Shown: positions 53,075 through 57,551 of the stretch, in pieces
How positions within the stretch are numbered: position 1 is the stretch's first letter
How the letters are laid out: the number at the start of each line of letters is the position of its first letter
Assembly: GCA_946965045.2 (NCBI GenBank)
Contig: OX337228.1
Span: 1,178,001-1,242,000 of the forward strand
Reading direction: 5' to 3'
Source of the DNA: Epithemia pelagica
Lineage: Eukaryota; Protista; Bacillariophyta
DNA length: 64,000 bases
Notes under the pieces: generated by a model
Told to the model about the DNA's origin: nothing
What the model saw: only the letters and a program-made list of their open reading frames with translations
The model's database searches: none
Translations under genes and position numbers: made by a program

Positions 53075-55768
53075 TTAACCATCGGCGAAACGAGCAGCTT
53101 GAGCAACTTGGTGGTAAAAGGCTGGTCCATACTCAATCGTGAACGCCGAGCTGGGTTGTTCGTCTTGGCGTTGTTGGTTTTCCTGTCGTCTGGACTGCTG
53201 CGTTGCCCATCCCACATAGCTAGCCGTATAGAGATCCCAGGTTCTTGGAATTAGAGTGGTCGCAAGCGGCTCTAAGGATTGAAAAAACTCGGACTCGATG
53301 TGCCACAATTTTCGGTCCACTCCAGGAACAAAGAGCGGCAAACGCCAAACCAGCGTGACATTGGGATACATTGCCTGAATGTTCTGGATGAGACCCTGAC
53401 ACGCCAGCACATACTCATGATCATCTGGTAACAGTGAGGGAGTTTCGTTCGGTGATGATCCACGTTGATCGGCATGTTCGTTGCCATAATTGTCGTAAAA
53501 CGGGTTGTCATGACCATTCTGATCCTCCAAGGATTGCAACTCTTGTTGGAACTGTTCTTGTTGATGAACCAACTTGCGGTTGGCTTCTTTGCTATTTCTA
53601 TTGGTAGTGCCATGGGCCATGGCATCCCACATGGAAGATCCCACAACCAAAACAATGGATCGATTATTGTGTGCTTGTTCTCCTTGCAGAAGGGTTTTCC
53701 CGTAACGTTCTCTCAGTTGTTGCATCAACACAGGTACATTCTCCACTGTCAACAAGGGTTTCTTGGTATCATCATCGTCGCCGCCATTTGGATCTCCAGC
53801 AGAAAGAGGTAAAATGGATCTCATGAGACTCTTCCAAGCCGCTGGTGAGCGACTAATTTTTGTGCCTTCCAGTCCGCTCTGTTGTTCTGCTGTGTTTGTA
53901 GAACATTTTTCCAGTTCCAGGGATACCGGATCCCACCCAAAAAACAAAACCAAAGGCCTGCCTGTGGTCGTATCTGTGATAGTTACTGGCAAGGGCGACA
54001 TGGAAGGAGATCGTGTCGAGGGAAGCGAGTCCAGGGTTGGACTGTTGTACCAACTGGACGCACCAAACAAAGGAGACTGCAGTCGCCAATCCTTTCTTGT
54101 CCAAATGTCTGCGGTTGTTGTTGTTGTTGTGAGATTGTTTTGTGGCACACAGCGTTCCAAGACTTGTAACGCCATGTAGTACGACTCATGCAATAGACCC
54201 GAGGTTGAAGTTTCCTGCGTCGTGTCACTGGAGGAGTTGCTTGTCGCGGTAGCGCCGCCTGAACGTGTACTATTAGTATCCGATTCCCGGGTGATTGTGT
54301 CTGCTTCCTGAACCTCTACAAAGTCTAAGGGAAGGTAGCGATTGGCACTGGATGTCAACGATCGTCTTTCCGTGTCCATCAATACGGCCACAGCTGTAAC
54401 AGTTTTTGTCACCCTTGTTGTTGAAGTAGTAGGAGGAGCTGTCCCATTTTGCATCATGTGATTTTGGTCGAACGCTGAAATGTTGGAAGAAAATGGCTCC
54501 GAGAATTGACGGACTGCGACAAGCGTTACAATAATAAGGCTATCGTTCAACTCGGACAAGAACCCCTCTTGAAGCTTCCATTGTGGACGCGATTCCATGA
54601 CGACAAATTGATTCGAACTACGTCTCAAAGGATGATGACAGAAAGTAGAAGTAATGTCAGGGACATGACCGCTGTTCTCATAATCTTCGGAATGCGAAAA
54701 GGTCAACGTCCATATTTTGGGCGAAGGAAGGATATTGTAATCGACATGACTAACCGAGACCACCAAGGTCTCTCCGGTTCGGCCAAAACTGTCGGATGCC
54801 GTTGCAGGTGGTGTTTGAGTTCCATTCACCACAAAAGAGGATGTCGTGCGAGAAGCTGAGGATGATGATGATGATTGGGCATGAGAATTGTGTACGATTG
54901 TCGATGCAGGTTTGGTCGTCAGGGGGTCTTGATTGGACGACAAGAGTGGGATGACGGCCAAGAAGAGGACAACGAACAAGCCCATTAATCGTTGATTGAC
55001 CGCTTTTCGGTAGCCTTGTTGGTGGTGTTTCTGACGTTGCTGTTGCAAGAGTTCTCTCTGCACCAAGGTCAATCGCAATTCTTGCTGTTCCACTCGCCAT
55101 TGGGCCAGCTCTTGATGTCGTTCGTTCGAATTTTGAAAGGTGACATGCCGTCGAGACAGGGTGACCGGAGTCTAATTATACCCCCACTTTTAGACCCGGT
55201 CTAAAAGGGTATAATTATTTTAGACAGAGGTCGAGTCTAAAATAAAATTTTTAGACTCTTAACCTTAACCCTTCAGTAGCGCCGCCACCACTGCGTGAGT
55301 AGGAGACCGTTCTGCCTCATTCATCTCAATGCCATCGCAATGAACAAAGTAAGGTCTCAGTTATCCTCTCTCATGCTTAGAGAGTGCAAGAACAATGTTA
55401 TCCATACCATCTAATAGCTTAGATGATGAAGCTATGAGGTCCTCTGGATGTGTTGTCATAGACAATGCTCGCTCCTAGTAGCTGGCTGTCTAGGGTTAGG
55501 GTTATTGCTTCGCCGTACAAAACCACGGAGAGATTTTAGACCCTGTTTTAGACATTTTATACAGTCTAAAAGTACTTTTAGATTTATTTTAGACCCGAAA
55601 TATTTTAGACTGTCTAAACGGTCACCCTGGTCGAGAGGGAGGAGAGGATGAAGAAGAATGACTTTTTCCTGTAGCTTCGACGCGGCGTATGTTCGTGGTG
55701 CTTCTGTCGTTATGACGAATGATGGAATGGACCGAGGAAGTGGTTGGTTGGGAGGAGGATCGATTCAT
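53075..55768 (-). CDS. Type II membrane-anchored protein (possible SGNH/PC-esterase-like fold), interrupted by a MITE; ~737 aa when repaired
   Basis: ORF 53075-55093 lacks an upstream ATG. Deleting 55157-55636 joins it in frame to ATG 55768 (MNRSSSQPTTSS...SSPP/SRRHVTFQN...). Hydrophobic anchor LMGLFVVLFLAVIPLL. C-terminal IVLVVGSSMWD...NVTLVWRLP resembles SGNH-like blocks (inference). Confidence 0.8.
55157..55629. mobile_element. 473-bp non-autonomous DNA transposon (MITE), hAT-like
   Basis: Perfect 11-bp TIRs CAGGGTGACCG (55157-55167) and CGGTCACCCTG (55619-55629). 7-bp TSD GTCGAGA at 55150-55156 and 55630-55636. About 13 subterminal TTTTAGAC/GTCTAAAA-type motifs. No coding capacity. Confidence 0.93.
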
Positions 55769-56163: not shown

Positions 56164-57551
56164 ATGTCCTCGGAGAGCGTCAAGAACAGTCCGACTGTCT
56201 TGGTGACGGGTGGTTGTGGATACATTGGGTCGCATACTTTGGTGTGTTTGTTGGAACAAGGCTACAATGTAGTGGTGGTGGACAATTTGTCCAACTCCTC
56301 CGTCACTTCCTTGGATCGAGTGCGAACCATTGTCGGCTTGCCGACTGCCAGCGACGACGTCAACAACAAGAAGGACCTGGACCGATTGGTCTTTTACGAA
56401 TTGGACATTTGCGATCCCGACAAGTTGCGTCAAGTCTTTGTCGATCAAAGCAACAAGCACGAAGGTCGACCCTTTCATTCTTGTATTCATTTCGCTGGTC
56501 TCAAGGTACGTGTTGGATGGTTGGTTTACAAGTTGGAGTCGTTGTGGGGTCGTCCAAGCCAAGGACGAATGACAATGGGGGGAACGAGTTGTGGATGGAA
56601 TCCCAGCGCAGTAATCCGTATCACCAGAGTCCCTTGCGTCAATGCTGGTGGATCTTCAATGTTTTCGCTGTCTGGCTCTTACGTCTTTGTCATGTTTGAA
56701 TGTTTTCTTGTCTCTGCTGCTACCCGAACGATCAGGCGGTTGGCGAATCGACCAAGATTCCTCTCAAGTATTACGAAAACAATTTGGGCGGAACCTTTAC
56801 CCTCTTACAGTTATTGGAAGAATATCAGTGCCATTCCCTCGTCTTTTCCTCCTCGGCCACGGTTTATGGGGCTGCCAAGGAAATGCCCATTACCGAACAA
56901 GCCACGGTAGGCTTTGGCATTACCAATGCCTATGGTCGTACCAAGTACATGATTGAAGAAATTCTGAAGGACTATTTCCAATCCATGACACTACGGAATA
57001 CAGAAACATCAACGACGGATTGGTCAATTGTTATTTTGCGCTACTTTAATCCAATTGGTGCACATCCGAGTGGTTTGATTGGCGAAGATCCCAATGGCAT
57101 TCCCAACAATCTCATGCCCTATGTGGCCCAAGTGGCTGTGGGTCGACGGCCGAAATTGACCGTCTTTGGCAACGATTATGCGGAATCGCACGATGGAACG
57201 GGTGTTCGCGATTATTTGCATGTCATGGATTTGGCCGAAGGACACTTGTCGGCTATTCAGTACATGGACCGACAAACACGGGGTCTCTTTACCTTTAATT
57301 TGGGAACAGGCACGGGCTACTCAGTCCTGGACATGGTAAAAGCCATGCAAAGTGCGAGTGGAAAGGAAATTCCCTACGATATTGGACCTCGACGATCGGG
57401 AGACATTGCCATTTGTTATGCCAATGCCGAAGCGGCGGCCTCGGAAATGAAGTGGCGGGCCAAACGCAATTTACAAGACATGTGCAAAGATTTGTGGAAT
57501 TGGCAATCGCAAAATCCGAATGGATACACGACACAAGACGAAAAAAAGTAG
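56164..57551 (+). CDS. GALE: UDP-glucose 4-epimerase, 2 exons, 385 aa
   Basis: Exons 56164-56505 and 56736-57551 (230-nt intron). VLVTGGCGYIGSHT Rossmann motif, HFAGLKAVGES, FSSSATVYG, YGRTK (YxxxK), LRYFNPIGAHPSG, GVRDYLHVMDLA. Confidence 0.97.

Follow-up and report, generated by a model that had tools for sequence, protein, structure and literature searches.

A recently inserted Ds-like hAT element in the 5′ coding sequence of a conserved diatom gene of Epithemia pelagica

We analysed a stretch of 64,000 nt from the genome of the diatom Epithemia pelagica (GenBank assembly GCA_946965045.2, contig OX337228.1, positions 1,178,001 to 1,242,000 of the forward strand; hereafter the window), with a GC content of ~47-48%. 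On the minus strand of the window lies a protein-coding frame in two pieces, separated by a transposable element that is flanked by 7-bp target-site duplications (Table 1). The element (473 bp) and one copy of the duplication make an insert of 480 bp, a length divisible by 3; excising these 480 bp joins the upstream 44-codon frame and the downstream 693-codon frame. With the insert in place, translation from ATG 55768 runs into the element for four extra codons (S R P G) and meets a TGA, so that 48 codons are read in total. The element, its inverted ends, the duplication, both frames and the stop had been described in an original prediction made from the sequence, and all of them were recovered at the same positions.

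Table 1. Positions in the window of the element, its flanks and the pieces of the interrupted gene
Feature	Position	Strand	Remark
Non-autonomous hAT-type element, Ds-like internal-deletion derivative, 473 bp	55157..55629	+ (transposase-sense)	Antisense to the broken gene
Left terminal inverted repeat CAGGGTGACCG, 11 nt	55157..55167		100% complementary to the right end
Right terminal inverted repeat, 11 bp	55619..55629		Minus-strand reading gives the premature TGA
Left 7-bp target-site duplication GTCGAGA	55150..55156		
Right 7-bp target-site duplication GTCGAGA	55630..55636		
Relic transposase start, 27 codons and stop	55395..55478	+	First 19 codons match the start of the contig-7 transposase
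Upstream piece, ATG 55768 and 43 codons, ending ...SSSSSPP	55637..55768	-	In-frame stop precedes the ATG
Premature stop TGA made by the insertion	55622..55624	-	Inside the inverted end
Downstream piece, 693 codons and stop, no internal stop	53075..55156	-	Single copy; homologues P0002-P0006 align over the full length
R-R-H-V-T-F codons, invariant motif, predicted cytosolic	55136..55153	-	Starts 1 codon below the junction; V-T-F 4 codons below
Predicted membrane anchor LMGLFVVLFLAVIPLLSSN, the only strongly hydrophobic segment	54932..54988	-	Kyte-Doolittle mean 2.2 over 19 residues; conserved in all homologues; contains ATG 54985
C-terminal domain, SGNH/GDSL-like alpha/beta fold probable	53078..53971	-	Residues 396-693 of the downstream piece

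The start of a divergent neighbour, a gene for an NAD-dependent epimerase/dehydratase (Pfam PF01370, 7.7e-12), lies at 56164-56502 on the plus strand, 395 bp from ATG 55768. The transposase-sense strand of the element faces this gene from ~535 bp, and read-out transcription into it is conceivable.

The inverted ends of the element match perfectly (11 of 11 positions). The element has 11 occurrences of the short subterminal repeat TTTAGAC, in either orientation and in both arms, versus one in the remaining 63.5 kb of the window. Two telomere-like repeats of the element, TAACCTTAACCCT (window positions 55260-55272) and AGGGTTAGGGTTA (55492-55504), form an inverted pair.

The original prediction had proposed a genome search for the copy number of the element and for an autonomous partner sharing its terminal repeats; further copies and such a partner were found. 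In the whole genome (60.5 Mb in 23 contigs) there are at least 22 full-length copies of the 473-bp element with identity of 91-100%; several partial or rearranged copies (<10) bring the family to ~25-30 copies, a count to be read as a lower bound. Among the 15 copies for which both ends were paired by a script, 14 had a perfect 7-bp duplication and the 15th had one mismatch. The recurrence of the same 473 bp at least 22 times genome-wide, together with the 7-bp duplications and the density of TTTAGAC, excludes chance by far.

The partner is a 4531-bp element on contig 7 with identical inverted ends, a 7-bp duplication (aaagtag) and an uninterrupted ORF of 1074 codons. The ORF product matches the Pfam domain Dimer_Tnp_hAT (PF05699; E-value 7.7e-10, 38.9 bits, above the cut-off of 21.4), while its match to DUF659 (27.3 bits) is below the cut-off of 34.7; in PDB it matches Hermes transposase at residues 445-503, i.e. 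in the dimerisation domain only (E-value ~6e-4). According to the genome search, this is the sole intact copy: a copy on contig 5, 98% identical, is split by other DNA and has a stop; the remaining hAT transposases of the genome are only ~35% identical to the contig-7 transposase. Relatives of the transposase carry PF05699 and PF04937; the closest named ones are fungal proteins (22-24% identity), and closer ones (38-42%) come from unnamed environmental or algal contigs. Between the transposase stop and its 3′ end the partner has a tandem array with an 86-bp unit (8.8 copies, 99% identity; L031:820-1578, G000:C7), which is absent from the 473-bp derivative.

Bases 1-303 and 310-473 of the element match the two ends of the partner with 85-95% identity. 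As both partner ends and the first 19 residues of the transposase are kept, the element is a Ds-like internal-deletion derivative. The 473-bp element would presumably be moved in trans by the contig-7 transposase; we infer such cross-mobilisation rather than observe it, since the derivative is just 85-95% identical to the partner ends. We also found a mini-derivative of ~230 bp (G000:C10:3344725-3344954) in which bases 1-117 of the 473-bp element are joined to bases 357-473, with 98-100% identity; it is a second, independent internal deletion.

The inverted ends of hAT elements start with the consensus YARNG, and their target-site duplication is usually 8 bp long. The perfect 11-bp ends found here start with CAGGG, in agreement with the consensus, while the duplication is 7 bp both in the derivative family and in the autonomous copy. 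Families of hAT elements with duplications of 5, 6 and 7 bp exist (PMC12730594), so that the 7-bp duplication is a variant compatible with membership; the 473-bp element and its partner belong to the hAT superfamily as its 7-bp-duplication variant. With respect to the target preference nTnnnnAn, a hand count in a small sample gave T at position 2 in 11 of 17 targets and A at position 6 in 10 of 17, which resembles nTnnnAn.

Three other copies were seen near or inside genes. An older one (L014:1190-2827; element at G000:C2, 2922760-2923232), with 13 mismatches to the family majority and the duplication ATTCCAT, lies inside a second gene. The ORF that it hits encodes a voltage-sensor-only protein of 289 aa (Pfam Ion_trans, 4.8e-8), ends with ...RVWRFVRIGHG and, judged by its sequence, resembles a proton channel of the Hv1 type. 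Across the empty site the frame runs on into a coiled-coil-like tail of 101 aa, hence this copy cuts off the C-terminal tail. Two more copies, L007 (G000:C3:3498295-3498767) and L013 (C17:876405-876876), precede long open frames, lying 62 and 81 codons before the first Met. It is common for hAT elements to land at gene 5′ ends, and from the positions of these two copies the family seems to do the same.

The copy in the window is the least diverged one. It has two mismatches in 473 positions to the majority of the 22 aligned copies, the fewest in the family; the copy nearest to it, on contig 3, differs from it by a single base. The downstream frame of the gene keeps 59 of the 63 residue-aligned positions at which the five homologues all agree, within the range of 0.80-0.98 that the homologues give when each is left out in turn. 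The low number of mismatches and the undecayed 693 codons indicate a recent insertion; thus the original prediction of a recent event, which had rested on the perfect ends and duplication, gains two further lines of evidence. The insertion is recent, and this is an observation on the same footing as the anatomy of the element, its family, its partner and its coding position. The intact 693-codon frame is explained by recency, but continued use of the frame would explain it too.

Only five homologues of the interrupted gene were found in two exhaustive protein searches; they have 635-674 aa, one comes from Epithemia clementina, and another is identical to an ORF of an MMETSP transcript that carries the N-terminal region. 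Among the homologues found, the family is limited to diatoms, as far as protein sequences tell. The database searches were made with the downstream piece only, the 44-residue upstream piece being short and of low complexity; the empty-site join was aligned locally. Another public contig, of 161,962 bp, carries this gene as well. A 562-aa gene call at the locus (P0001) begins at a codon that is Val in the genome; we read it as a bacterial-type gene call and did not accept it as evidence for a downstream start.

In the assembly we found no paralogue of the gene and no second copy of the gene or its flanks, thus nothing that could compensate, and no haplotig with the empty site. The metagenome contigs searched had neither a protein relative nor an exact match to the 24-nt empty-site junction, a result of little weight as close records may be missing from them.

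In all five homologues the initial Met is followed by a variable tail of 15-34 residues, then by a proline, by the invariant block (V-T-F, E-R, W, Q, F-R) and by a single hydrophobic segment. The variable tail thus stands before V-T-F in each of them, and none starts at the equivalent of the first in-frame ATG below the insert, 54985; the condition that the original prediction had named as refuting it, orthologues starting there with no conserved upstream frame, does not hold. When the site is modelled empty, the proline invariant in 5/5 homologues comes from the upstream piece, with the right spacing (P, four residues, V). On this evidence from sequence comparison, the insertion sits in the 5′ coding sequence, within the first 50 codons of a conserved diatom gene, and the interruption of a 5′ coding region that the original prediction had put forward is borne out. 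One copy of the element would have been inserted, by a 7-bp staggered cut, at codon 45 of this single-copy gene.

One could argue that the element landed in a 5′ UTR or an intron, with the true start of translation located downstream and the gene unaffected, particularly as the copies L007 and L013 do precede the first Met of long open frames. At this locus, however, the conserved coding sequence starts 1-4 codons below the junction. Among the 4 codons from the junction to V-T-F there is no ATG and no AG dinucleotide, so that neither a downstream start nor an intron acceptor could rescue the motif, and the homologues all start upstream of it. Given that both the sequence at the junction and the homologue starts contradict a UTR or intron location, we rejected it as extremely improbable.

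The product of the gene would have, in order, a variable cytosolic tail, the motif R-x-V-T-F, a long helix, a membrane anchor, a Ser/Thr-rich linker, a beta-rich domain and an SGNH-like domain. The hydropathy scan places the hydrophobic stretch at residues 57-75 of the downstream piece; this segment, MGLFVVLFLAVIPLLSS, is the conserved single membrane anchor of the family, with invariant F, F, L, P and S. The basic residues and the predicted long helix preceding it suggest a type II anchor; therefore the product is suggested to be a type II membrane protein, with the topology derived from prediction.

The pattern [R]-x(0,1)-V-T-F is present in all six proteins (the window gene and P0002-P0006) and fits the RVxF docking motif of protein phosphatase 1. 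This RVxF-like motif may be a putative regulatory handle on the cytosolic tail.

For the C-terminal domain, in a structure search against representatives, all 50 matches listed were SGNH/GDSL-type esterases/acyltransferases or SGNH-like domains in larger proteins (Z of 9.7-7.2, the best over ~160 residues), the query models being of low confidence: pLDDT of the AlphaFold models was 42.5 for the full length and 56.6 for residues 396-693. An Atlas lead, to be taken as a lead only, also points to an SGNH-like fold. A Foldseek search produced nothing significant (best E-value 0.15), a Pfam search with the gene and the five homologues gave no match, and neither did a PDB profile search. An invariant G-S-S-x-x-D (G506, S507, S508, D511) follows a beta strand; on the other hand, with respect to the SGNH blocks G-D-S and D-x-x-H, the C-terminal domain has no invariant His, and its T-W-D-L-Y block has no His at +3. 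The domain is probably SGNH-like, and we use this label as a lead.

The insertion parts the only usable start, ATG 55768, from all conserved sequence, and places a stop four codons into the element. With the start cut off and a premature stop added, a loss-of-function allele on the sequenced haplotype is the most likely outcome; from the sequence we judge it probable that this allele is a fresh one, too young for decay. A read-through transcript would present to the ribosome, in this order, the stop after 48 codons, eight ATGs of the element, ATG 55146, ATG 55100 and then ATG 54985. The two ATGs that precede 54985 below the element are out of frame: 55146 opens 25 codons, and the 116-codon frame opened by 55100 overlaps the main one. 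Since the start of the relic transposase is directed to the opposite strand, the element offers no obvious promoter for the broken gene.

Besides a null allele, the original prediction had considered a soluble isoform created by the transposon. In this scenario transcription newly initiated within the element or just below it would give a protein from ATG 54985, whose anchor would become a cleavable signal peptide with the luminal domains secreted. Indeed, the first in-frame ATG is 54985, with 636 codons of intact frame from there on; the P-L-L-S-S after the hydrophobic core of ~14 residues agrees with the rule-of-thumb -3/-1 pattern of signal-peptide cleavage. Still, the hydrophobic segment is the conserved anchor of the family, so its signal-peptide-like composition is no evidence for secretion, and Met 54985 is replaced by V, L, I or A in the homologues. 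The protein would be devoid of the invariant cytosolic motif and the helix. With ten ATGs to pass (the eight in the element, 55146 and 55100), the zone where a useful start could fall is only 115 nt long, and the relic promoter side of the element points to the other strand. We regard secretion as unlikely: the null allele is the part of the prediction that we favour, and the isoform is the part that found no support. The stronger statement, that the insertion re-wires the gene from a Golgi/ER-resident SGNH-like enzyme with a docking motif to a secreted, unregulated one, appears rather improbable; if true, a transposon would have changed the topology of a protein in a single step, and the change would have been caught in the act.

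Function might also be preserved if the element were spliced from the mRNA as a new intron, as is the case for some maize Ds and dSpm insertions, giving a near-normal protein with a slightly changed variable tail. There are 13 GT..AG combinations that restore a stop-free frame; the conserved motif is retained in full by one, with donor 55681 and acceptor 55172. Nevertheless, all donors are weak (GTCGAA, GTCATT, GTGACC), 12 of the 13 combinations remove part or all of the invariant motif or the helix, and the introns would be 510-660 nt long; introns of this length are long for diatoms. Such a rescue of the gene looks quite improbable to us, and the preferred reading is still the loss-of-function allele.

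Taken together, the intact transposase, the nearly identical short derivatives and the fresh hit in a gene indicate a DNA transposon family that is mobile now, or was so very recently, in a diatom hosting a nitrogen-fixing endosymbiont. For a conserved membrane protein restricted to diatoms, the locus would offer a natural knock-out or knock-down allele, and the insertion would be a polymorphism to track in populations. The compact pair of transposase and ends could be tried as a tagging tool for diatoms. Disruption of a gene by a transposon is textbook biology and an event of an ordinary kind, so no concept is changed; the added value is modest and consists of an apparently live 7-bp hAT family and a natural disrupted allele.

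Comparison with known proteins and elements shows what is shared in each case. As for the gene product, SGNH/GDSL esterases/acyltransferases include Golgi type II PC-esterase/TBL proteins (XOAT1), which have a similar architecture, an N-terminal anchor followed by luminal domains; the diatom C-terminal alpha/beta domain matches their fold with the Z values given above and has the invariant G-S-S-x-x-D. The diatom protein differs in having no sequence match in Pfam or PDB and no conserved D-x-x-H, its models being of low confidence.

The original prediction had called the element a MITE. The element is indeed a short non-autonomous transposon: it is below ~800 bp, has only the 27-codon relic ORF and is non-coding otherwise, has inverted ends and a target duplication, and its family is found near gene 5′ ends. 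However, MITEs reach hundreds or thousands of copies, whereas the whole genome holds ~22 full-length and <10 partial copies (a lower bound). With so few copies and a parent element that can still be recognised, it is not a typical MITE, and the description as a low-copy, Ds-like derivative of a hAT element formed by internal deletion fits better.

In rust fungi, families with 7-bp duplications received the name ‘hAT7’ in December 2025 (PMC12730594). The diatom family shares with them a hAT-type transposase and a consistent 7-bp duplication, and the nearest named relatives of its transposase are fungal (22-24% identity); this likeness does not imply shared descent. The diatom partner has no TET/JBP passenger gene, and the host is a stramenopile, so the 7-bp-duplication hAT elements extend past rust fungi, the only hosts named in that work.

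A further parallel is the maize Ac/Ds system of the hAT superfamily, in which Ds deletion derivatives cause insertional mutations. The duplication is 7 bp in the diatom and not 8 bp; the diatom transposase is only remotely similar, its match in PDB to Hermes being to the dimerisation domain alone; and the diatom partner has an 86-bp tandem array (8.8 copies) after its ORF. Still, the two systems have in common 11-bp inverted ends starting with CAGGG, short subterminal repeats in both arms, a non-autonomous copy that arose by internal deletion while an intact transposase is encoded elsewhere in the genome, and an insertion in the 5′ part of a gene.
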